Assembly (NCBI GenBank): GCA_965240325.2
Contig: OZ251228.1
Location: 1,984,001-2,048,000 of the forward strand
Source: Rebecca billardiae RCC1528
Taxonomy: Eukaryota; Protista; Haptophyta
DNA: 64,000 nt
Reading direction: 5' to 3'
Below, piece after piece: positions 8,367 to 24,868 of the stretch. How positions within the stretch are numbered: the stretch's first letter is position 1; each line of letters opens with the position of its first letter. The notes beneath the pieces were generated by a model. That model was not told the DNA's origin. It saw nothing but the letters and a program-made list of their open reading frames with translations, and searched no databases. A program made the position numbers and the translations under genes.

Positions 8367-8801
8367 ATGATGCTCCGTGCCGTCTATGGTCGCCGGCAGT
8401 CGATGCTCCGCCTCGGGCGCCGATGGGCCTCGCAGCCATCAAAGGGCGGACAGCAGGTTGACGAGGAAACCGTGCGACGGCTCGCCGAGGAGAATCGCCG
8501 CGCGGAGCAGATGTGGAACACGCTCGTACCCGAGCGCCAGATTGACAAGCGTGGTGTCGGCTTGCTGATTGTGGCGATCATCGCGCTGCACACGTACAAC
8601 AGGTACAACATGCAGCGGGAAGCCGAGGTAGACAGCCTACCGGAAGGTGCGAAGGAGCAGCTCCCGAACGGCTCTTACCTGATGAAGGATGGCTCCATCC
8701 AACAAATCGACCACACACCCACGAAGATGACGGTCGTGGAGACGCCAAAGGAATCGACACTGATGCTCGACAAAATGATCTCCTGGGCGCGCAAGGACTA
8801 G
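8367..8801 (+). CDS. Small single-pass membrane protein, probably mitochondrial; function unknown
   Basis: 144-aa ORF with protein-like composition, an Arg/Ser-rich presequence (MLRAVYGRRQSMLRLGRRWAS) and one hydrophobic helix (GVGLLIVAIIALHTY). Confidence 0.7.
   Translation: MMLRAVYGRRQSMLRLGRRWASQPSKGGQQVDEETVRRLAEENRRAEQMWNTLVPERQIDKRGVGLLIVAIIALHTYNRYNMQREAEVDSLPEGAKEQLPNGSYLMKDGSIQQIDHTPTKMTVVETPKESTLMLDKMISWARKD

Positions 8802-9479: not shown

Positions 9480-9551
<72 letters not shown>
9480..9551. repeat. (TA)n microsatellite
   Basis: About 35 perfect TA units. Confidence 0.98.
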
Positions 9552-9767: not shown

Positions 9768-11459
9768 TCAGTTGACAGCGGGCTCCCATTGAGCGGGGAG
9801 GAACTTGACATAGGTCGCCCCGAGGGCGTCGATTTTCGTGCCGGACCTGCCCTTCAGTGCGATCAGTACATAGTCCTCATCTGGCGGGCTGAGGGAGAAT
9901 GGGCCGCCTCCGCCATTTCCCCCTGCAATGAACGGGGCCCTGCCGTCGTTGAACTTGACCTCAATCTTGTCGACAAAAGCGCCAGTCCAAAGGTCGACCT
10001 TGCTGATGCCAGAACCGGAATGATCAAAATGGCCCGACTCATGCCCCACTCGATCGCCGTAGTGCATCTCTCGCAGGTTGCCCTTGTGCTCATAGACGAT
10101 GTGCAGCTGCCTCCAGTATGCCATCGGACCGTCTAGGAAGACCCAGAAGTTCTTCAGAGGTAGCTTGTTGTTGAGTGTGACTAGCACGTCGCCGCCGCCG
10201 AGATCGTGCAGGTTGTCCCAAGTGACTCCGCCTGGCCCGCCCTCGATGTGCGTGCGGTGCGTGAGCACTTCAAGTTGCGGGGTGCCCTTGTGTGCGTAGC
10301 TCACATCGGGCCGAGTCACCTCATAGAAAGGGTTGCTGAAGTAGGTGTTCATCAGATTCACTATCTCGTCCGCTTGCGCCACCGCTGCAGCCCGATGGTC
10401 CTTCAGCTCGGGGTCTGCATGGCTCTTCTCGTATGCCTCGTATACCTCCTCGATCGACTTGATCGAGCCGACCACAGCGTCGATCCTGGCCAGGCAGTTG
10501 ATGAGCGGAAGCTTCTCCTGCGGCTGACGGTGCGCGTCTGCAAACTTGAGCGCGTTGAGCTCGATCTGCTCGAAGCGTGCGCGCGGCAGCGACGAGAGCG
10601 TCGAGTAGAACCGGGTGTTCCAGTCCAGCGTTGCGTCGCCGTCCTTGGCCTTTTCTGGGAACTCGAGCGCGTACGCCACGATGCCGTCCTTGTCAGGCAT
10701 GGCACCGTTGTACCCAAAAGCCTGCTGCTCAAAGTGTGTGTGTGTGAAGGTTTCCTTCACGTAGTTGTTGAGCTCAGTGCTGACCTGAGCACTGAGCGTG
10801 GCGCCTCCCACGATGCCTTTCGCCTTCAGCTCCCCTGTGATCCTCGTCTGCTCCTCGCGCGTCGTCGAGCGCAGGATGTAGGTCGCGTAGTATGCGGCAC
10901 CTCTGTTCACCTCAAAGACGTAGCTGTCGCCGTGCGTGCGGTACCACGCGCGAACTGACTCGTCGTCGTCGGCAGGCGGCTCGCCGACCAGCTTCGGCTC
11001 AGACGTCAGGCGATGCCGCCGCGACACCACCGACTTCACCACGATGGCCACGTTGTGGCTCTTGACGTTGAGCTTCTTGAAATAAGAGGCCTTGGTGCCG
11101 GCAGAGAATGTGAGGTAGGAGACCTCTGCCTGTGCGTTGATCTCGAGAGAAGACGCGACCTCACTCTCCGAGGTGCACACGTCAATCACCACGGTGGTCC
11201 GGCTGTCCTGCGTCACCTCATCGCCGTCTTGCACTGCCTTCGTCATCGCCTGCGAGAAGACCGAGTTCACGCCCTCACGCAAGGACACGGGCGGGCTGAT
11301 GATTTGGGAGAGGGTCTGGTTGCTCGCGTGCTGCCCGCCATTCGGGCTCGAGTCAAGTCGACCAGGCGGCGCCGCGGAGGCCAGGCCGCGCAGTACGACC
11401 AGCGCGAGCGCGAGGACCGTGGCCACGGCGGCCGTGACGAGCAGGTCGGAGCGCTTCAT
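9768..11459 (-). CDS. Secreted/anchored protein with MACPF-like N-terminal domain and C-terminal jacalin-like lectin domain, intronless
   Basis: N-terminal hydrophobic segment. WYRTHGDSYVFEVNRGAAYY resembles the MACPF Y/W-G-T/S-H-F/Y-x6-GG signature. The C-terminus has jacalin motifs GGPGG...W, GGNGGGPFSL and IALKGRSGTKIDALGATY. Confidence 0.75.
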   Translation of the reverse strand: MKRSDLLVTAAVATVLALALVVLRGLASAAPPGRLDSSPNGGQHASNQTLSQIISPPVSLREGVNSVFSQAMTKAVQDGDEVTQDSRTTVVIDVCTSESEVASSLEINAQAEVSYLTFSAGTKASYFKKLNVKSHNVAIVVKSVVSRRHRLTSEPKLVGEPPADDDESVRAWYRTHGDSYVFEVNRGAAYYATYILRSTTREEQTRITGELKAKGIVGGATLSAQVSTELNNYVKETFTHTHFEQQAFGYNGAMPDKDGIVAYALEFPEKAKDGDATLDWNTRFYSTLSSLPRARFEQIELNALKFADAHRQPQEKLPLINCLARIDAVVGSIKSIEEVYEAYEKSHADPELKDHRAAAVAQADEIVNLMNTYFSNPFYEVTRPDVSYAHKGTPQLEVLTHRTHIEGGPGGVTWDNLHDLGGGDVLVTLNNKLPLKNFWVFLDGPMAYWRQLHIVYEHKGNLREMHYGDRVGHESGHFDHSGSGISKVDLWTGAFVDKIEVKFNDGRAPFIAGGNGGGGPFSLSPPDEDYVLIALKGRSGTKIDALGATYVKFLPAQWEPAVN

Positions 11460-11545
11460 CAAGGGTGATCGGACGGGTCAAGCAAGGCGGGGCCGCGGTG
11501 GGTCGGGGGGTGACGACGTCAGGGGAGAGGTGACGTCAACGGACG

Positions 11546-12599
11546 GAGGCCGCTCGAGCGACTTCGTGTCTGGCGAGGCAGATCGCGCCAGTGCGTGGCG
11601 AGGCAGACGCTCGCCTGCCTCGCCGCTTGGCGAGGCAGCTAAGCTAGTAAAGCCGCGGCCGAACTTTACGAAAGCCAAATGTCTGCCGGTGCGCCGCCCG
11701 TCTTTTGCGCACGGTGACAAGGGCGCGCGAGGGCGCTTCCTCACGATCCCGAAGAGCGCTGCGCGCGGCGTCGCGTTGGCGGCGGCAGCGGCGCTGGGGT
11801 GTATCTTGCCCATTCTGCGTGGCGGCGCGCTCTCATGACGCCTCGGCCGCCGCCACGCCATGCGCGACCGGGCGTGTCGCCTTCTTGACGGGCAGTGCAC
11901 ACGCCCTTGCAAGCGCACAGCCGTGAAGAGCCGAGAGCGTCCGTCGCGAGCACGCCGCCCACGCGGGATGCGTTATGCTGTCACCGAAGCCACCTTGCGC
12001 ATGCGCTTCGCCGAGTTCGCCATGCGTTCAGAGCAGTCAAGATCGCTGAACGAGAGGATGTCATCGGCTGAAATGCAGGTTAGCAGTGCTCATCGTAGCT
12101 GCTACCCATGGTCATCCTGGCTCGCACATGCCAGAGCGCGAGCACCCAGTGTCATACGAATAGCCCTGGCAACGCATCCCGCGTGGGCGGCGTGCTCGCG
12201 ACGGACGCTCTCGGCTCTTCACGGCTGTGCGCTTGCAAGGGCGTGTGCACTGCCCGTCAAGAAGGCGACACGCCCGGTCGCGCATGGCGTGGCGGCGGCC
12301 GAGGCGTCATGAGAGCGCGCCGCCACGCAGAATGGGCAAGATACACCCCAGCGCCGCTGCCGCCGCCAACGCGACGCCGCGCGCAGCGCTCTTCGGGATC
12401 GTGAGGAAGCGCCCTCGCGCGCCCTTGTCACCGTGCGCAAAAGACGGGCGGCGCACCGGCAGACATTTGGCTTTCGTAAAGTTTGGCCGCGGCGTTACTA
12501 GCTTAGCTGCCTCGCCAAGCGGCGAGGCAGGCGAGCGTCTGCCTCGCCACGCACTGGCGCGATCTGCCTCGCCAGACACGAAGTCGCTCGAGTGGCCTC
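11546..12599. mobile_element. Non-autonomous foldback DNA transposon: 429-bp TIRs, 196-bp spacer, 5-bp TSD GGACG
   Basis: Arms 11546-11974 and 12171-12599 are reverse complements with about 3 mismatches. Termini are GAGGCC...GGCCTC. ggacg lies at 11541-11545 and 12600-12604. Confidence 0.9.
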
Positions 12600-13611: not shown

Positions 13612-16600
13612 TTAACTGTTAAGAGTAGAAAGGCACGAGCCGATCGCCTTGGCAACGCCGGTCGCCAGGAGCTCCTGCACGACGCTCGCAATGGCCTCGT
13701 TGGCGTAGAGCGCGTCCATCAGCCAGGGCAGCGCCTGCGAGAGCGCGATGAGTAACGGCTCCTCCAGGGCGAAGGTCTGCGCCAGCGCGACCCCCCACAC
13801 GCCCACGAGCGCGCGGAACTTGTGCTCGCCAAACGTGCGCGCATACGCAATCACCAGCACGTGGAAGACGGCGCAGCTGCTGAGCATGAAGCCCCACGCG
13901 CACAGCCGGCGCACCGGCCGCGACGGCGTGCAGCGCGCAAGCATCACGGCGCGGACGGTGCGCTTCTCCTCCGCCTGGCGCGGGTGCGAGCATGATGAGA
14001 GCGCGGGGGCGCGGGGTGCTGCACGAGTGAGCAGGGGGGCGTCTGCGGTTCGGGCTGCACGCGCGCGCCCATGCGTCCCCGCGGGGCGCGAGCTCGCGCG
14101 GTGTGGGCCCGCCGCACTCGGCCGCGCGCGCGCGCGCGCGCGTGCGCACCTCGCGCCGCGCCGTGTACCAAGCCTCGAGCTCGGCGAGCTGCACGCGCCC
14201 GTCGCCGTCCGTGTCCAGCTGGCGCGCCACGCGCGCGGCCTCTGCGCGGCTCAGTGAGAGCCGGCGCTTCTGGCGGAAGGAGGGCGAGGCGTCAGAGAGC
14301 CTTCGGCCGTTCGAGCCTCGGCGCGCGGGCGAGCCCTCGCGAGCGCCCGCCAGCGCTCTGAGAAGCTCGCCCACCTCCTCGCGATCGATGCTGCCGGAAC
14401 GGTCCAGGTCGGCCGCGGCGAAGAGCGCGCGCAGCTGCGCGAGCTCGGCCTCGATCTGCACCGACGAGCGCCGGCGCTGCGCGCGCGTGCCGCTGCCCGG
14501 CTCGTACCCGTCTGAGGCCGCGTCGGCGGCGGGCGCGGGCACTCGGCGAGGCGGAGGCGAAGGCGTCGTGCCTGGCGAGTCTGCGGGCCGCGAGTGCACC
14601 GGGGCCCAGCTCGTCGGCGGCGTCGACACCGGCGGCGGCGGCGATGGCGGCGGGGACGGCTCGCTCCCTGAGGTGTAGTCCCGCACCGCGTCCACGTCCA
14701 GCGGGCTCGAGCGGCCCGCGGCGAGAGGGGTCGAGCGGCCCGCGCCGAGCGGACTGCGGCTGCCCGGCGTGCCGAGCGGGCTGCAGCCCGCTGCCACCAG
14801 CGCGCTGGAGCTGCCGCCAGCCAGCACCCTCGGGCTGCCCGCCGGCGGCGGGCTCGAGCACACGGAGAGGATCGGGCTGCCTTTGTCAGGGCAGTGGTCG
14901 GCGGCGACGGCGGTGCTGATGGCGAGCTTGGCGGCGCTGCTGGGGCCAGCGCCGGGCTGCAAGAGCGGAGGCGGCAGCGGCTCCGGAGGTGAAGGCAGCC
15001 CCGCGCGAACGGCGCCGGCCGAGGCGCGCGCGGGGCGCGGAGGCGGCACCGGCCTCACCAGCGGCGGCGTGACCGTCGCGCGCCGCGGGCGCGGAGGGCT
15101 CGTGGGCGGCGGGGCCGGGCGCTCCTTTGCTCGGAGCATCACGGGCGCGGAGGTGCGGCGGCTGGGCGTGACGCGGCCAGGCGTGAAGGCGGCACCTGGC
15201 TTGTTGCCGTGGCCGCTGTCGCACCGCTCACCGCCCACCCACTCGTCGGGCGTCGCGTGCGCCCGGCGGCCGCGAGCGGCGCCGGCGGTGCCGCCATCCG
15301 CCGAGCCGCTCCCGCCGCCCGCGTCAGCCACGCCCAGCTTGCTCGCTCGCGTGCTCAGCTCGCTCGAGCGCCGACTGCGCCGGCCGGTGCGGCTGGCGAA
15401 GCTGGCGCGCGAGCTGGGCGACGGCGACGGCATCCGCACTGCCGATGAGAGCGCGCGCACGCCGCTGTAGATCCTGTCGAGGGCCTGCGGGCGGCGCGCG
15501 TGGCCCAGCGCGAACGCGGCGTGGAAGAGGGAGAGCGCGGGCGCGGCGACGAGCGCGACGACGAGGGCGACCAGCACGAGCGGCAGCAGCTCGATCGGCT
15601 CGTCCGTCTCGTCCACGCCGCCTTGGAAGTAGGCGCACTCCAGCACCGCCTCAAGCGCGAGCATGTTGAAGAAGATCTGCACGAGCTCGGCGCGCGTGAG
15701 CGACGACTCGTCGAAGGGCGAGAAGGCGAGCGCGAGCAGCGTGTGCTCCGTGAACAGCGCGGAGAGGAACGCGCGCACGCGCGCGCCGACGGGCACGGCG
15801 GCCTGCGAGGAGAGCACGGAGGAGGCGCGACGGCGCACCGAGCTCTCGGCCGATGGTGCGAGGCCCTCGTCATGCGCGCTGCTGCCCGCGCGCGCCGGCG
15901 TCGGCCGTCGCTCCTCCGCACCCGTGGGCTCGCCGTGCGCAGCGGCTCCGCCCTCCTCGGCCGCGAGCGAGTCGCGGCGCGAGTGCACGAAGATCAGGAT
16001 GGGCTCCGCGGTGCTGGACGCGTGCGAGGCGCGCGCGCTCCGACTAGCGAGCGCAAGCCCGCCCGCCGCCGCCGCGCCCGACGGCGGCGCGCTCAAGCTG
16101 CCCGGGGCGCTGCAGCGCGCCGTGCGGCCCGTCCCGCCCGACGCCGCGGCGGAGACGGCCTCCGTCGCGCCCGCGTGCTGCCTCGTGGTCGGCGTGCCGG
16201 CGCCTGAGCTCCGGGCCGACGCACCGCCGCCAACGCTGCCGCTGGAGTTGGGCTTCCGCCCCGACGACGACGTCGGCGTGACGGTGCCTGACCTGCGCGC
16301 CGAGGCGGCGCCGCCAAAGCTCGAGGCCGGCGTGGAGCAGCCGGCGCTCGACACGCTGCCGGAGCGCTGGGAGCGTCGCGCGTGCTCGGTGCGCATCCAC
16401 GCGGCCGCCTCCTCGGCGGTGGCGTCCGCGTCGCCCTCGTCGGAGGCGCTGACGGACGAGCGCCTGCGCGCGGCGGAGGAGGCCGCGCCGGCCGCCGAGC
16501 GCCGATCGAGCGCGCACGCGCACGCGAGCGCCAGCAGGTTGGCACCGGCGAGCGCAAAGACGAGGGTGAAGGCGGCGGGGTTGTCGCGGACGGTGCTCGC

Positions 16601-19600
16601 GCTCGCGCCCGTCTGCAGCGCGGCGTTCACGTCGTCGGCGCCGAGGGTGTTGATCGCAATCGCCTCCGCCGCGCCCTCCTCCGCCGCGCCCTCCGAATCT
16701 GGCACCACGACGCCGGCAAAATGGGTCAGGTGGTTGCACGCGCACGCCAGCGCGGCGGACGCGTCCGCCCCAGCGCGGGGCGCGCGCGCCTCGCACCCGC
16801 GCCCGTCCCACGTGCCCGCGCTCTCGTTCCAGAAGCGGCACGCGCGGCCGAGCCCCGCGCCGCCGTCCGCGCCGCCCTCGCCGCCCGGCTCGGCCAGCAG
16901 CAGTGGGATGTGCAGCTCGACTGGCTCTGGCAGCTCGCTCACTCTGATCGCAGCCCCCGCCCCACCGTCCGCCGCGGGCGCGCCCAGCTCGACGGCGAGC
17001 ACGCGCGTGCCCAGCGTGCCGTGCTCGCCGCCGCCGTGCACGTCCGAGCTGAACAGCACGAGGTGCACGTCCACGCCGTGCGGCAGCGCGCGCGCGCCGC
17101 CCGCGCGCGCGAGCGCCGCCTGCGGCAGCTGCACGCCTCCGGCCGCCGCGCCCGGCGCGCGGAACTCGAGCTCGGCGAGCGCGCGCGCGCGCGCGCGCGT
17201 CGCCGAGACGTTGAGTCGAGCGGAGAGCGCCGCGCGCGGCGCCTCGCCGGGCAGGAGCCCGCGCGCGAGGGCTCGCGAGACGGAGGCAGCGGCGTGCGCG
17301 ACCGAGGCATCGCGCGCCGAGCCGGCCGCGCCGACGCTCGCCGGCGGCACGTCGGTGCCGTTCGCTGAGAGCAGCGAGGAGAGCGTGGCAGCGAGCAGCG
17401 CGGCGGCCGCGTCGGCGATGCCCGCCGCCTCGGCCGCGACGGCGAGCACGTGCGCGAGCTGCGCGCCCTCCGCCTGCGCGCTGGCGGAGAGCTGCTCCGG
17501 CGTGCGGAGCGCAGCGTGCGCAGCCTCAACGCGCGCGCGGACGGGACTCTCGCTCGGCGTGGCGGGCGCGGCCGAGGCCGCCGCCACGCTGCGGAGCGCG
17601 CGGATCATCAGCAGCCGCGCGTGCTGCGCGTCGCGTGCGCCCACGACGTCGCTCGCGCCGCCCTCCGCCTCGCCAGCCTCCTTGCCCTCCGCTGTGGCGG
17701 GAAGTCCCTCAAGCGCGCCGCCGAGCGCGAGGCTGAGCTGCTGCGCGCGCTCCGCGTCGTCCTCCGACGCGGCGGCGCCGAGGGCGGCGAGCAGCGCGCG
17801 GAGCGTGTGCGCGTCGAGCGTCGGCGCGTCGACGGGGGTGGGCTGCGCGGCACGCGCGAGCACGCTCACGCCCAGAGCGTCCGTCACCCGCGCGAGCGCG
17901 CGGTGCGCCCCCGCCGGGAGGACTGCCTTGCAGGCTGCCGAGAGCTGCGCGCGCGCCGTGAGCGCGCGCGCGCCCTCGGCCTCGGCAGCGCCTGCTGCGT
18001 CGGCCTCCTCAGCCGCCGCCGGCTCGTAAGCAAATTCGTACCGAAGCGGCAGGCCCTCCAAGCCCTCGTCAGAGACCCAGCCAGCCGCTCTGAGCTGGAA
18101 CAGCGTCTGCCCGGCGAGGCCAGAGGCGGGCGTCGCCGTGACCGAGCCCCCCCACGGCTCTCGGCCGAGCGTCACGGTCACGCTCGCCAGCGCCGCGCTC
18201 GCGAGCGCCTCCGCGCCGCGCGGCGGTGTGACCGTGAGCTCGAAGACGTACGCCGCTCCCGGCGCGAGCACGCCCGCGCGCACGGCGAGGGCGGGCTGCG
18301 CGTCGCCCGTCGTCGTCACGCGTACCTGGTCAGCCAGATCGACGAGGGTGAGGAGGCCGCCCGCCGCAGCGTGCTCGGCGCCGAGCCCCCCTCCGTCGTC
18401 GTACTCGCCCGCGCCCTCGTCGGCGGCGTCGGCCGCGGGCAGTCGCGCGCCGCGCCACGCGTACTGCCACGGAACGTCCGCAGCGCTCAGGTTGCGAGCC
18501 AGCGCCTCCTCGACACCGCTCACCACGCCGGCGTGCGCGAGCAGAGCGGCTGCGTCTGCCGGTGTGGGCAGCCGCACCTCAAGCGCTTCCAGGCCGAGCT
18601 TGTCGAGCGCGCTGAACGCCGAGCGCGCGAGCGGAGCGAGCGAGATCGTAGGCAGCGGCGCGGTGCCGTTGCCAGCGCCGCCGCCGCCGCCCTCGCGCAC
18701 GACAAGAGTGACTGCGGCGGACGCGGCGCGGCCGTCCGCGGAGCGCACGACAACAGTCGCGCGATACACGCCCGTCTCGAGCGCGCCGCCAGCGACGCGC
18801 AGCACGGCCGCCGACGCGGCGGATGGTTCGAGCGCCACGCGCGTCGGGCTGCTGCCGCCCGGCGCGATCTCGCCGCCGGCGCCCACGCGCACGGCCGCCA
18901 CGCCACCGTGCCGCTCGAGGGCCCACGCGAACGACAGGCTTGGGCCGCCGCCCGCGCCAGTGCCGCCCGCGCCGACGCCCGCGCCGGGCGGCAGCCGGCT
19001 TGGGTCGTACGAGGCGGACGCGTCGAGCACGAGCTCGTCGTCCGCGCGCGCGGTGCGCAGGGTGCCCCCGTCGACGCGCGCCACCACGCGCTCCGCGAGC
19101 ACCGCCACGCGCACCGAGAGCTCCGTGCGCGCCAGAGGGTCGGCCTGCTCGGCGACGCGCGCCACGAACGCGTACGTCCGCCCTGCGCACAGCGTGCCGC
19201 GCGGCAGCGAGAGTGTCGGGCCGCGCTGCTCGCTCAGCTCGAGCGGCGGGACGTCCGCCGCGGGCTCGTCGGTGTCCGTGACTGCCGTGCCCGCGTGCTC
19301 CCACGCCCACGCGAAAGCGCGCTCGCCGCCCGCGCCGCCACTCGCCGGCGGGCTGACGCACGGCGAGCGCGCCGCGCGCGCGCGCAGGACCAGAGGCTCA
19401 GACGAGCGCGCGACGCGCCGCGCCGGCCCGTCCACCTCAAGCGTCGGCGTGTCCTGCCGGTCGGAGCGACGGACGCGCACGGCCGCGGGAGCGGAGCGCG
19501 TGCCAAAGCTCAGCGAGCAGACGACCAGCGTGAAGATCAGCTCCGAGCCGGCGCCGTGCAGCCCGTGGGCGCGGCCGAGGGTCAGCATGGCCGCCTCCGG

Positions 19601-22600
19601 CGGGCGCGCGCTCAGGGCCGCCTGCAGCGCGGAGACATTGCCATCGGCCGACGCGCCGACCGCCCACTCGAAGGCGAGGCCGCCGGCGCCGCCGCCCGTG
19701 GACATGGAGCCGTCGAGGGTCAGCTCCGCGTCCGCGCAGGTTGAGATGAGCGCCGCCGCGCTGAGCACCGCCTCGGGCGACGGGCAGTCGTGGCCGTCAC
19801 ACGGCCGCGTCTCGTTGATGGCCGCCGACTGGTTGGTGGCGCACAGCGCGTGCGGGCAGCTCAGCCCCGCAGCCGCGAGGCCGCGCGGGCCGAGCACCTG
19901 GTCCCGCAGGCCGATCCGATCGCCGGGGCGCACGCCGCTGGTGACGGCGAGCCGCACGGCGAGCGTGCTGCCTGCGGTGTCCCACTCGCACGCCGGAGAG
20001 TCGGCGCCAGCCCCGCGCACCAACCGGAGGGACGCGTCGTCGAGCACGGCCGCGCACGCCGAGGGCACGCCGGGCGCCATGCCCGCGCGGTCGGTGCGCG
20101 CGCCGGCGGCGAAGCGCAGCAGCAGCCGCGTGCCGGCGGCGCTGAAGGTGGCCTCAGCGAGCGTCGGCGCGCGCAGCTCCTCTGCAGGGGGCTGCGGGGG
20201 CGCTGGAGGCGGGCTCAAGGGCTGCGCGCTCGGCGGGGTCGGCGGGAGTGAGCTCGGAGGCGTCGATGGCGGTGGCTGGGCCGGCGGCCCGGATGGCAAT
20301 GGTGGGAGCAGTGAGGATGGCGGAGGGCTTGGTGGCGGCTGTGACGGCCGTGGGCTCGGCGGCGGGCTTGGCGGTCGTGACGGTGGCTCGCTTGGAGGTG
20401 GCGCCGATGGCGGCGCGGGCGGAGGCGATGGCGGTTGTGCCGGTGGAGTTGTTGGCGGGCTTGGCGGGGGGCTAGGTGGCGGCGGGGGCGGGGGCGGGCT
20501 GGGTGGCGGGTTTGGCGGTGGTGGTGGCGGCTGGCTCGGCGGTGGCGGTGGTGGGGGCGAGGGCGGAGGCAACGGCGGTGGCGACGGCGGCGGAGATGGT
20601 GGTGACGGTGGCGGGAACGGCTCCACGCGTGGTGGTGGTGGCGGCGCTGGTGGCAGAGATGGCGGAGGACTCGGCGGCGGCGGCGGCGGCGGCAATGGCG
20701 GCGGCGATGGCGGAGGGTTCGGGGGCGGAGCTGGTGGCAACCGTGGCGGCGGGCTCGGCGGCGGGCTCAGCGGCGGGCTGGGTGGCGGCAGGCTCGGCGG
20801 CGCCGATGGCGGAGGGCTCGGCGGCGGACTCGGTGGTGGTGGGCTCGGCGGGGGGAATGGCGGTGGGCTGGGCGGCAAGCGCGGTGGCAGGCTTGGTGGG
20901 GACGATGGTGGCGGCGACGGTGGTGGGCTTGGCGGTGGTGACGGTGGCAGCAATGGCGGCGGTGATGGCGGAGGGCTCGGTGGCGGGCTCGGTGGTGGTG
21001 GGCTCGGCGGTGGGCTCGGTGGTGGTGAGGGCGGTGGTGAGGGCAGCGGGCGCGGCGGTGGCGGACTCGGTGGCGGTGATGGCGGTGGCGAGGGCGGTGG
21101 ACTCGGTGGCGGGCTCGGCGACGGCGGGCTCGGCGGCGGGCTCGGTGGCGGCGATGGCGGAGGGCTTGGCGGCGGGCTTGGCGGTGGGCTCGGCGGTGGT
21201 GGGCTCGGCGGTGGTGACGGTGGTGGGCTCGGTGGTGGTCTGGGTGGCGGACTCGGTGGTGGCGATGGCGGTGGGCTCGGCGGTGGGCTTGGCGGTGAGC
21301 TCGGCGGCGGCGATGGCGGCGGTGATGGCGGAGGGCTTGGCAGTGGGCTCGGCGGCGGCGATGGCGGCGGTAATGGCGGAGGGCTCGGCGGCGGGCTCGG
21401 CGGCGGCGATGGCGGCGATGATGGCGGAGGGCTCGGCGGCGGGCTCGGCGGCGGCGGGCTCGGCGGCAGCGATGGCGTTGGTGACAGCGGAGGGCTCGGT
21501 GGTGGTCTGGGTGGCGGACTCGGTGGTGGCGATGGCGGTGGGCTCGGCGGTGGGCTTGGCGGCGGCGATGGCGGCTGCGATGGCGGCGGTGATGGCGGAG
21601 GGCTCGGCGGCGGGCTCGGCGGCGGCGGGCTCGGCGGTGGGCTCGGCGGATGCGATGGCGGCGGTGATGGCGGTGGGCTGGGCGGCGGACTCGGCGGCGG
21701 TGGGCTTGGGGGCGGTGATGGTGGTGGCGAGGGCGGTGGACTCGGCGGCGAGCTCGGCGGCGGCGGACTTGGAGGCGGTGATGGCGGTGGTGACGGCGGA
21801 GGGCTCGGCGGCGGTGGGCTTGGTGGTGGGCTCGGTGGCGATGAGGGTGGTGGTGAGGGCGGTGGATTTGGCGGTGGCGGGCTGGGTGGCGGCGATGGCG
21901 GTGGGCTTGGCTGTGGGCTTGGCGGAGGGCTCGGTGGTGGTGGGCTCGGCGGTGGTGACGGTGGTGGGCTCGGTGGTGGTCTGGGAGGTGGACTCGGCGG
22001 TGGTGATGGCGGTGGCGACGGCGGCGGGCTCGGTGGCGGGCTGGGCGGCGGCGGGCTCGGCGGCGGCGATGGCGTTGGTGACGGCGGAGGGCTCGGTGGT
22101 GGTCTGGGTGGCGGACTCGGTGGTGGCGATGGCGGTGGGCTCGGCGGTGGGCTTGGCGGTGAGCTCGGCGGCGGCGATGGCGGCGGTGATGGTGGAGGGC
22201 TTGGCGGTGGGCTCAGCGGCGGCGATGGCGGCGGTGATGGCGGAGGGCTTGGTGGTGGGCTCGGTGGCGGCGATGGCGGCGATGATGGCGGAGGGCTCGG
22301 TGGCGGGCTCGGCGGCGGCGGGCTCGGCAGTGGGCTCGGTGGTGGTGAGGGCGGTGGTGACGGCGGAGGGCTCGGCGGTGGCGGACTCGGTGGTGGCGAT
22401 GGCGGTGGCGAGGGCGGCGGGCTCGGCGGAGGGCTCGGCGGAGGGCTCGGCGGCGGTGGAGTCGGTGGCGGGCTCGGTGGTGGTGAAGGCGGTGGCGCGG
22501 GCGGCGGGCTGGGCGGTGGTGGGCTCGGTGGCGGCGATGGCGGTGGGCCAGGTGGCGGGCTCGGCGGCGGGTTTGGTGGTGGTGGGCTTGGCGGTGGTGA

Positions 22601-24868
22601 TGGTGGGGGGCTCGGCGGTGGGCTCGGTGGATGCGATGGCGGCGGTGATGGCGGTGGGCTGGGCGGCGGACTCGGCGGCGGTGGGCTCGGGGGCGGTGAT
22701 GGTGGTGGCGAGGGCGGTGGACTCGGCGGCGAGCTCGGCGGCGGCGGACTTGGAGGCGGTGATGGCGGTGGTGACGGCGGAGGGCTCGGCGGCGGTGGGC
22801 TTGGTGGTGGGCTCGGTGGCGATGAGGGTGGTGGTGAGGGCGGTGGATTTGGCGGTGGCGGGCTGGGTGGCGGCGATGGCGGTGGGCTTGGCTGTGGGCT
22901 TGGCGGAGGGCTCGGTGGTGGTGGGCTCGGCGGTGGTGACGGTGGTGGGCTCGGTGGTGGTCTGGGAGGTGGACTCGGCGGTGGTGATGGCGGTGGCGAC
23001 GGCGGCGGGCTCGGTGGCGGGCTCGGCGGTGGCGGGCTCGGCGGTGGCGATGGCGGTGGGCTTGGCGGTGGGCTTGGCGGAGGGCTCGGTGGTGGTGGGC
23101 TCGGCGGTGGTGACGGTGGTGGGCTCGGTGGTGGTCTGGGAGGTGGACTCGGCGGTGGTGATGGCGGCGGCGACGGCGGCGGGCTCGGTGGCGGGCTCGG
23201 CGGTGGCGGGCTCGGCGGTGGCGATGGCGGTGGGCTTGGCGGTGGGCTTGGCGGAGGGCTCGGTGGTGGTGGGCTCGGCGGTGGTGACGGTGGTGGGCTC
23301 GGTGGTGGTCTGGGAGGTGGACTCGGCGGTGGTGATGGCGGTGGCGACGGCGGCGGGCTCGGTGGCGGGCTCGGCGGTGGCGGGCTCGGCGGTGGCGATG
23401 GCGGTGGGCTTGGCGGAGGGCTTGGCGGAGGGCTCGGTGGTGGCGGGCTCGGCGGTGGTGACGGTGGTGGGCTCGGTGGTGGTCTGGGAGGTGGACTCGG
23501 CGGTGGTGATGGCGGTGGCGACGGCGGCGGGCTCGGTGGCGGGCTCGGCGGTGGCGGGCTCGGCGGTGGCGATGGCGGTGGGCTTGGCGGTGGGCTTGGC
23601 GGAGGGCTCGGTGGTGGTGGGCTCGGCGGTGGTGACGGTGGTGGGCTCGGTGGTGGTCTGGGAGGTGGACTCGGCGGTGGTGATGGCGGTGGCGACGGCG
23701 GCGGGCTCGGTGGCGGGCTCGGCGGTGGCGGGCTCGGCGGTGGCGATGGCGGTGGGCTTGGCGGTGGGCTTGGCGGAGGGCTCGGTGGTGGTGGGCTCGG
23801 CGGTGGTGACGGTGGTGGGCTCGGTGGTGGTCTGGGAGGTGGACTCGGCGGTGGTGATGGCGGTGGCGACGGCGGCGGGCTCGGTGGCGGGCTCGGCGGT
23901 GGCGGGCTCGGCGGTGGCGATGGCGGTGGGCTTGGCGGAGGGCTTGGCGGAGGGCTCGGCGGTGGTGGGCTTGGCGGTGGTGATGGTGGTGGGCTCGGCG
24001 GCGGCGATGGCGGTGGTGACGGCGGTGGGCTCGGCGGCGGGTTCGGCGGTGGCGGGCTCGGTGGTGGGCTCGGTGGCGGCGGGCTCGGCGGCGGGCTCGG
24101 TGGCGGTGATGGCGGAGGGCTCGGCGGCGGGCTAGGAGGCGGCGGGCTCGGTGGCGGGCTCGGTGGTGGGCTCGGTGGGGGCGATGGCGGTGGTGAGGGC
24201 GGCGGGCTTGGTGGTGGTGGGCTCGGTGGCGGTGATGGTGGTGGGTTCGGCGGTGGGCTTGGCGGTGGGCTCGGCGGTGGACTGGGTGGCGGACCTGGCG
24301 GTGGTGATGGCGGTGGTGCTGGTGGTGGGCTCGGCGGTGGCCTCGGCGGCGGCGATGGCGGCGGTGACGGCGGAGGGCTCGGCGGCGGGCTCGGAGGCGG
24401 TGGGCTCGGAGGCGGTGATGGCGGTGGCGAGGGTGGAGGGCTCGGCGGCGGGCCCGGCGGTGGCGGGCTTGGTGAAGGCGGCGGTGGTGGCGGCTGTGGT
24501 GAAGGCGGCGGTGATGGCGGCGGTGGTGGCGGTGGTGAAGGTGGTGGTGCCGGCGTCGGCGTCGGTGGAAGAGGTGGCGATGGCGGTGACGGCGGTGATG
24601 GAGGCGGGGAGGGCGGATTCGACGGCGGACTGGGTGGCGACGGTGGCGACGGTGGCGATGGTGGCGACGGCGGAGGCGGTGCAAGCGGTGGTGACGGTGG
24701 GGGCGATGGCGGAGGTTGCGGCGGCGGATGCGGCGGCTGAAATGGCTGTCCACCGCGAAGCATCATCGGCTGCAGCAGCAGGACCAGCCCAAACAGACTC
24801 TGGGCCTGCCGTGGCCGCGCTCTCGCGCGCGTTGTGCACGCGCATGTCATCCCGCGGCCGGACATCAT
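13612..24868 (-). CDS. Giant polycystin-1-like membrane protein: signal peptide, ~1450-aa (Ser-Pro3-4)n stalk, REJ/PKD region, GAIN/GPS motif, TM helices, EF-hand pair; intron 13975-14149
   Basis: REJ motifs LTLDGSMS, LVLDASASYDP and GSVTATPASGLAGQTLFQLRAAGWV. GPS motif CRFWNESAGTWDGRGC...CACNHLTHF is followed by a TM helix. EF loops DLDRSGSIDREE and DTDGDGRVQLAE. The last exon carries further TM segments. Confidence 0.85.
20290..24740 (-). repeat. Coding Ser-Pro (extensin-like) repeat with a higher-order 174-bp tandem unit
   Basis: The marker tctgggaggtggactc recurs at 22961, 23135, 23309, 23483, 23657 and 23831 (period 174 bp), and again at 21980. Confidence 0.95.

Follow-up and report, generated by a model that had tools for sequence, protein, structure and literature searches.

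A predicted MACPF-jacalin protein with a signal peptide, encoded by a single-copy gene of the alga Rebecca billardiae

A window of 64,000 nucleotides from the haptophyte Rebecca billardiae RCC1528 (the whole stretch of DNA analysed here; GenBank assembly GCA_965240325.2, contig OZ251228.1, positions 1,984,001 to 2,048,000) carries on its minus strand a long open reading frame (ORF) whose composition sets it apart from its neighbours. This raises the question of what kind of protein the ORF encodes, and how the gene came to be in an alga. The product appears to be a two-domain protein, with an N-terminal MACPF domain and a C-terminal jacalin-type lectin domain, and it belongs to a large and mostly bacterial family. 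Both domain folds, their motifs, the family membership, the integration of the gene as a single copy in a chromosome and its maintenance by purifying selection are firm. We consider it probable, with moderate confidence, that the protein is a secreted, single-chain, lectin-guided MACPF/CDC pore-forming protein, whose secretion, sugar specificity, oligomerisation, lysis and ecological target we infer.

The two domains and their family

The N-terminal domain is of the MACPF/CDC fold, as judged from a structure model together with sequence profiles. AlphaFold with a 150-sequence alignment gave a model with a predicted local distance difference test score (pLDDT) of 87.6 and a predicted template-modelling score (pTM) of 0.82, with disorder only in the signal peptide and residues 30-53; the single-sequence model was uninformative (pLDDT 35). 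The model has a four-stranded antiparallel bent sheet flanked by two helical clusters, which is the canonical MACPF/CDC layout. The structure comparison was exhaustive, the model being set against all 48,161 representatives of the PDB. Foldseek, as an independent search, matched it to perforin, MPEG-1, Mpf2Ba1, TgPLP1 and stonustoxin at expectation values (E) of 1e-7 to 1e-6. A separate structure search was saturated by jacalins, so that it was uninformative on the N-terminal domain, and the MACPF matches were supplied by the wide search. A fold search of the ESM atlas gave a TM score of 0.72 over 498 residues to a jacalin-bearing cluster of 547 residues, the other rows all being MACPF, SNTX or perforin. 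Language-model features agree with the MACPF assignment.

Comparisons at the sequence level point the same way. A profile restricted to the N-terminal domain matched Aeg-L (9uj0) among PDB sequences at E 1e-8, and its sub-threshold matches were all to MACPF proteins except for two chance matches to bromodomains; among these, stonustoxin aligns nearer the N-terminus, and GNIP1Aa, astrotactin-2 and C9 align across the signature. The query itself gives no match to the Pfam MACPF model (PF01823), and a six-frame scan of the genome detected no canonical Pfam MACPF. Among 90 family members, however, 15 do match this model, with E up to 0.01 and 2e-6 as the best value.

The signature has exactly the spacing of the MACPF pattern, with matches at G177, Y180 and G187 and deviations at H176, D178, S179 and A188. 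The family consensus, Y-G-D-S-F-x6-G-G, matches the pattern at five of seven positions; G177 is invariant in the family, and D178 and G187 are conserved in at least 90%. In alignments the signature falls on YGDRF...KGG in Aeg-L, and in GNIP1Aa, astrotactin-2 and C9 it likewise coincides with the signature region. Both helical clusters, which correspond to the two transmembrane hairpin regions (TMH1 and TMH2) of MACPF proteins, show strict hydrophobic/polar alternation, with beta hydrophobic moments in the top decile. Their lengths of 41 and 44 residues lie in the range of about 40-60 that is usual for such hairpin regions. The helical connector that follows the core is conserved in the family and is partly covered by MACPF structure matches, which extend to residues 380-397.

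The C-terminal domain is a jacalin-type lectin with a candidate mannose-type sugar site, as read from model and sequence. The three-fold beta-prism of four-stranded Greek keys (jacalin beta-prism I, PF01419) is present. The GG loop and the G-x-x-x-D loop are conserved among family members, and both align with their counterparts in ZG16. In mannose-type jacalin lectins these two loops build the sugar site. Taken alone the query reaches 19.5 bits against Pfam Jacalin, below the gathering cut-off of 22, and finds weak matches to ZG16 and griffithsin among PDB sequences. The family profile matches the plant jacalins of the PDB at E 7e-27, and Pfam Jacalin itself is matched, with E up to 0.01 and at best 3e-21, by 77 of the 90 members. 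Beyond the sub-threshold Jacalin match, Pfam and NCBIfam gave for the query alone only a match to Hsp33, which is spurious. A few unrelated jacalin genes are present elsewhere in the genome.

The ORF is uninterrupted from 9768 to 11462 and measures 564 residues if counted from a TTG codon, 563 from the ATG (Table 1). Since a signal peptide is found at the start and a homologue-like F-x-P-A-x-W tail at the C-terminus, the entire protein lies within one exon. The signal peptide is modelled as a single helix of low pLDDT. A first-pass annotation, made from the letters alone, had described an intronless ORF of about 563 residues with a leader peptide, a degenerate MACPF signature, amphipathic strand-like segments and a terminal jacalin domain. 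Its description of the protein stands: the frame is a single exon, the leader is a classical signal peptide, the signature has canonical spacing, the amphipathic segments (residues 103-126 and 217-229) fall in the two helical clusters with their strict alternation, and the lectin domain is borne out by the beta-prism, the sugar-site loops and the family profile. Structure prediction with Foldseek, which it had suggested as a check, yielded the MACPF fold with the bent sheet and both TMH clusters.

Table 1. Features of the MACPF-jacalin gene and its flanks (positions in the window; residues are those of the 563-residue protein; CDS, coding sequence)
Feature	Position	Strand	Remarks
Complete single-exon CDS, 563 aa	9771-11459	minus	ATG at 11459; stop codon 9768-9770
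Signal peptide, residues 1-29	11373-11459	minus	MKRSD, 18-residue hydrophobic core, A-S-A at 27-29, Ala at +1; read from sequence
Disordered spacer, residues 30-53	11301-11372	minus	pLDDT <50; outside homologue alignment
MACPF/CDC-fold core, residues 54-290	10590-11300	minus	Bent central sheet, strands 81-95, 137-151, 179-196, 241-248
TMH1, first helical cluster, residues 96-136 (41 aa)	11052-11174	minus	Helices 98-104, 121-130 between strands 1 and 2
Degenerate MACPF signature, residues 176-188, H-G-D-S-Y-x6-G-A	10896-10934	minus	Spacing of Y/W-G-T/S-H-F/Y-x6-G-G
TMH2, second helical cluster, residues 197-240 (44 aa)	10740-10871	minus	Helices 201-213, 224-236 between strands 3 and 4
Helical connector, residues 291-395	10275-10589	minus	Helices 293-307, 319-342, 350-375 in model
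Jacalin-type beta-prism lectin domain, residues 396-553	9801-10274	minus	
GG loop G-G-P-G-G, residues 405-409	10233-10247	minus	
G-x-x-x-D loop G-T-K-I-D, residues 540-544	9828-9842	minus	
(TA)n microsatellite	9481-9551		About 215 nt downstream of stop codon; outside gene
Foldback (long terminal inverted repeat) non-coding transposon, 1054 bp	11546-12599		87 nt upstream of ATG

How widely is this layout found? A word-indexed protein search, with the query or with a 90-sequence profile, found the near-identical copy of a second strain alone, and for this reason an exhaustive HMMER search was needed. It yielded 485 cluster representatives at E <=1e-3 and 34 at <=1e-30. Most of these relatives are about 500 residues long and align to query residues 55-559, i.e. 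they have the same two-domain layout. The named members are overwhelmingly bacterial, Thalassospira, Sorangium, Acinetobacter and Massilia/Pseudoduganella among them. Loci were found in the genomes of at least 33 bacterial species of the Alpha-, Beta- and Gammaproteobacteria, Bacteroidota, Acidobacteriota, Myxococcota and Eremiobacterota, a lower bound given that the locus search used one peptide pattern from 12 sequences. In the tree of the bacterial members Bacteroidota stand beside Sphingomonas, and Neisseriaceae beside Burkholderia; this conflict with taxonomy suggests that the family is mobile among bacteria.

NCBI labels the bacterial members only "jacalin-like lectin" or hypothetical, and under such a label the pore-forming half of the family is invisible in annotation. 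Proteins of about 500 residues that carry it, such as WP_085590869 of Thalassospira, WP_018678992 of Acinetobacter tjernbergiae and WP_272095295 of Sorangium, are true members, which align with the query end to end and have the same MACPF-connector-jacalin layout. They differ from it in being only 24-30% identical and in having no signal peptide, as is the case for the bacterial homologues generally, and no published function was found for them.

Eukaryotic members are fewer: the fern Adiantum nelumboides, Ascomycota clusters from the atlas searches, and one marine protist. The last is represented by two poly-A transcripts from one MMETSP culture (JGI 3300016936), both with a signal peptide. 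The Adiantum protein (MCO5548249.1, 968 residues) has a Pfam MACPF match at 130-192 followed by a full MACPF-jacalin unit at 459-968. From its sequence this looks like a tandem MACPF arrangement, and both a fern gene and a contaminant are conceivable.

MACPF pore-formers that carry a C-terminal carbohydrate- or membrane-binding domain are already known as a kind, and a survey of jacalin proteins from 2017 includes MACPF-jacalin chimeras (PMC5536079). The suggestion of the first-pass annotation that such an effector may not have been described therefore fails for the sequence family, with its 485 clusters, and holds for function: in the literature no functional study of the family, and no paper on such proteins in algae or bacteria, was found. 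A paper on horizontal gene transfer in Marchantia mentions MACPF only generically. What is new is the recognition of the N-terminal half of the family as MACPF, which annotation had missed. New also are a lineage of MACPF-jacalin proteins with predicted signal peptides in eukaryotic phytoplankton, and the presence of a selectively maintained, single-copy MACPF-jacalin gene in a chlorophyll-c alga.

Pore formation and its alternatives

MACPF proteins are pore-forming effectors in animal immunity, in apicomplexan egress, and among fungal and bacterial toxins, and it is well established that a pore module can be aimed at a particular cell surface by fusing it to a lectin. A scheme for the algal protein can be drawn along these lines. 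The signal peptide would direct the protein into the secretory pathway. In algae with secondary plastids, whether a protein goes to the plastid or is secreted depends on the residue that follows the A-S-A site (the ASAFAP rule), Phe, Trp, Tyr or Leu leading to the plastid; the presence of Ala at this position therefore argues against plastid import. The jacalin beta-prism, with its GG and G-x-x-x-D loops intact, might then bind a mannose- or glucose-type glycan on a target surface, and monomers thus concentrated on a membrane would oligomerise through the MACPF domain. The helical clusters would refold to amphipathic beta-hairpins and form a large beta-barrel pore. Likely targets would be other cells, e.g. 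grazers, parasites, competing algae or bacteria.

The protein might instead be a MACPF-lectin, secreted or surface-bound, that does not lyse membranes. Its lectin would then serve in adhesion, in organisation of the cell wall or mucilage, or in signalling, and its MACPF domain would be a membrane-binding or oligomerisation scaffold, as in the astrotactins and plant CAD1/NSL1. Astrotactin-2 is found among both the structural and the profile matches. Moreover, the signature of the query departs further from the MACPF pattern than the consensus of the family does, which counts for a non-lytic role. However, both TMH regions retain the length and the strict amphipathic alternation needed for hairpin insertion, and Aeg-L, the nearest solved relative that can be detected by sequence, is a proven pore (a 36-chain entry). 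Furthermore, the arrangement of a lectin with a pore module recurs in toxins. We regard a non-lytic role as unlikely, although it deserves to be kept in mind.

Another possibility concerns the number of components. Aeg-L of Alternaria alternata acts with the aegerolysin Aeg-S (PMC13341504, PMC9505663), and since it is the closest solved homologue by sequence, the algal protein might likewise be half of a two-component toxin in which the MACPF protein depends on a second, small protein for membrane binding and the jacalin domain has an accessory role. Aeg-L and the pleurotolysin B/PlyB-type fungal MACPFs (PDB 9uj0, 9do6) are two-component systems in which a separate aegerolysin gives lipid targeting (PMC9505663), but they have no jacalin domain. 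In 77 of the 90 family members the targeting domain is fused in cis, and beside the algal gene no conserved small neighbour gene is visible. A search for aegerolysins (PF06355) gave no match in the 72-Mb genome, a weak test in that the control genomes also gave none. A two-component toxin is therefore very improbable, and a lectin-guided single chain is the reading that we prefer; the cis-fused lectin plausibly takes over the membrane-targeting task that a separate aegerolysin performs for Aeg-L.

Other known proteins share this design in part. Plu-MACPF of Photorhabdus (2qp2) and MPEG-1/perforin-2 (6u23) have a beta-prism whose sequence is not of the jacalin type and whose ligand is presumably a lipid, not a sugar, and they show no sequence-level similarity to the MACPF-jacalin family. 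In the natterin-like jacalin-aerolysin proteins (zebrafish Dln1/Aep1, 4znq; lamprey LIP, 5zu4) the pore module is of aerolysin type, not MACPF, and the lectin is N-terminal. Nevertheless, Dln1, lamprey LIP and the MACPF proteins with a C-terminal beta-prism follow the same logic of a targeting domain fused in cis. The pesticidal proteins Mpf1Aa (GNIP1Aa, 6fbm) and Mpf2Ba1 (8b6v) carry other, non-jacalin C-terminal domains and have insect targets.

Origin and maintenance of the gene

The composition of the ORF had led to the proposal that the gene was acquired horizontally. Its GC content is indeed lower than that of the window (0.61 vs 0.71), and the protein is far richer in Lys, Asn, Tyr, Phe and Ile than the Ala/Gly/Arg/Pro-rich products of its neighbours. 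However, the contrast is located at the second codon position (GC2 0.42), and GC at the third position (GC3) is 0.80 compared with 0.77-0.88 in the neighbours. Since GC3 is host-like, the low GC content is no sign of recent acquisition; the compositional contrast reflects the type of protein and not foreign DNA. A small adjacent ORF shares the codon-position GC profile of the gene. Nor is the single exon a sign of foreignness, because large genes in this genome are commonly intronless, e.g. the neighbouring gene of 3749 codons with REJ, GPS and EF-hand domains.

Recent transfer from a bacterium, or contamination of the assembly, would fit a mostly bacterial family and a gene that is intronless, single-copy (in a 72-Mb genome of 41 contigs) and below its neighbours in GC. 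The gene is found, however, some 2 Mb inside a contig of several megabases, where it is flanked by a dispersed repeat of the alga and by the eukaryote-type REJ/GPS/EF-hand gene; a second strain has it as well. Besides the evidence of GC3 and of the intron-poor genome, it has a eukaryotic-style signal peptide, its best bacterial identity is only about 30%, and it groups with eukaryotic transcripts in the phylogeny. Such an origin is extremely improbable.

As to the host, at least 61 matches to light-harvesting proteins are present in the genome, mostly in one piece. The two that were checked are of the fucoxanthin chlorophyll a/c type, with diatom Lhcf closest (E 1e-72) and FCPI/ACPI-type Lhcr also matching, and this rules out a green alga as host. 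By these proteins the host is a chlorophyll-c alga that resembles ochrophytes most. Many of the light-harvesting genes form tandem or head-to-head arrays of identical copies, on contigs C7, C12, C13 and others (e.g. C12:667121-669893 and C7:3299001-3307727).

Could the gene have been transferred at an earlier time? The alga and the two MMETSP transcripts form a clade in all trees (FastTree support 97; quick IQ-TREE 96; careful IQ-TREE 100 by ultrafast bootstrap and 99 by the Shimodaira-Hasegawa-like approximate likelihood ratio test, both IQ-TREE runs under a mixture model). All three are on long branches, with identities of 28% at most, and the only connection of the clade with the bacterial sequences is a long branch at the midpoint of the tree. 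With this single long branch, nesting within the bacteria cannot be shown. In the approximately unbiased (AU) test a tree that forces alga, protist and fern together was not rejected and was in fact slightly better (p-AU 0.585); independent transfers to fern and alga were thus dropped as a firm claim.

Among bacteria the family is widespread, among eukaryotes its occurrence is patchy. From this an old bacterium-to-eukaryote transfer is plausible, perhaps at even odds; an old eukaryotic gene with many losses is a plausible alternative. If transfer did occur, the host-like GC3 and the low identity to bacterial proteins indicate that it was old. Thus the proposal of horizontal acquisition loses its recent form, and the phylogeny shows neither a bacterial donor nor a rejection of a single eukaryotic clade; of the compositional argument, the lower GC and the amino acid bias remain as observations.

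The gene is under purifying selection. The second strain (Logan ERR14847151) has a copy at 99% identity on a 2007-bp contig, which is read as genomic DNA of a sister strain and not as a transcript, since it ends near the upstream transposon and in downstream simple repeats. The two coding sequences differ at eight synonymous and three non-synonymous positions, and the pN/pS ratio of 0.12 (binomial P 0.0009 for the synonymous excess) is the evidence for selection. The 3' flank is 3.8% divergent with three indel runs, compared with 0.65% divergence in the coding sequence. These data also bear on the question of whether the gene is a silent relic, intact but unexpressed and decaying, perhaps through silencing that starts from the transposon next to it. 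No RNA evidence was found (one run has small fragments, its library type is not given, and it weighs neither way), and a young foldback element is present close upstream of the start codon. But the frame is open over 563 codons, and the low pN/pS next to a diverged flank argues against decay; a relic is improbable.

Flanking sequences and significance

The (TA)n tract and young transposon that had been reported at the borders of the ORF were both found. In the second-strain contig other simple repeats are present near the (TA)n site, ending in a (CT)n run, beyond the aligned stretch; with different simple repeats at the same place in the two strains, the microsatellite appears to be fast-evolving. 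The foldback element consists of 429-nt arms that are 99% complementary and a 196-nt centre. Full copies number at least 40 and are spread genome-wide over many contigs; they are 95-100% identical and fall into two age classes of about 99-100% and about 96% identity.

Further upstream, an uninterrupted ORF of 3749 residues (13622-24868, minus strand) encodes a polycystin-1-like receptor with REJ, GPS and EF-hand domains. Its product is 60% Ala, Gly, Arg and Pro, and as GC1, GC2 and GC3 are nearly equal, the frame may be partly low-complexity or mis-framed. On the other side, a 144-residue ORF on the plus strand (8367-8798; GC3 0.79) has an Arg-rich N-terminus, one hydrophobic segment and no Pfam match; to judge from these features, its product may be a small organelle-targeted membrane protein.

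What might a lectin-guided pore-former mean for an alga? It is possible, although doubtful, that chlorophyll-c phytoplankton hold an old lineage of signal-peptide-bearing MACPF-jacalin proteins, to which this alga and an MMETSP protist with at least two expressed paralogues belong. In this view the proteins would be a weapon, aimed by way of glycans at grazers, parasites, competitors or bacteria, and would be of ancient bacterial origin, with a eukaryotic secretion signal added. If this is correct, it would bring a proteinaceous pore-forming toxin into the chemical ecology of phytoplankton, where small-molecule toxins otherwise predominate.

A large family with the MACPF-jacalin layout thus reaches eukaryotic phytoplankton in the form of a selectively maintained single-copy gene whose product is predicted to be secreted. 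Should the protein not be lytic, the finding would still correct the annotation of several hundred protein clusters. Should it be lytic, it would be a natural and simple single-chain model of glycan-directed MACPF pore formation, and a tractable protein candidate for allelopathy, or for defence against grazers or parasites, in a microalga.
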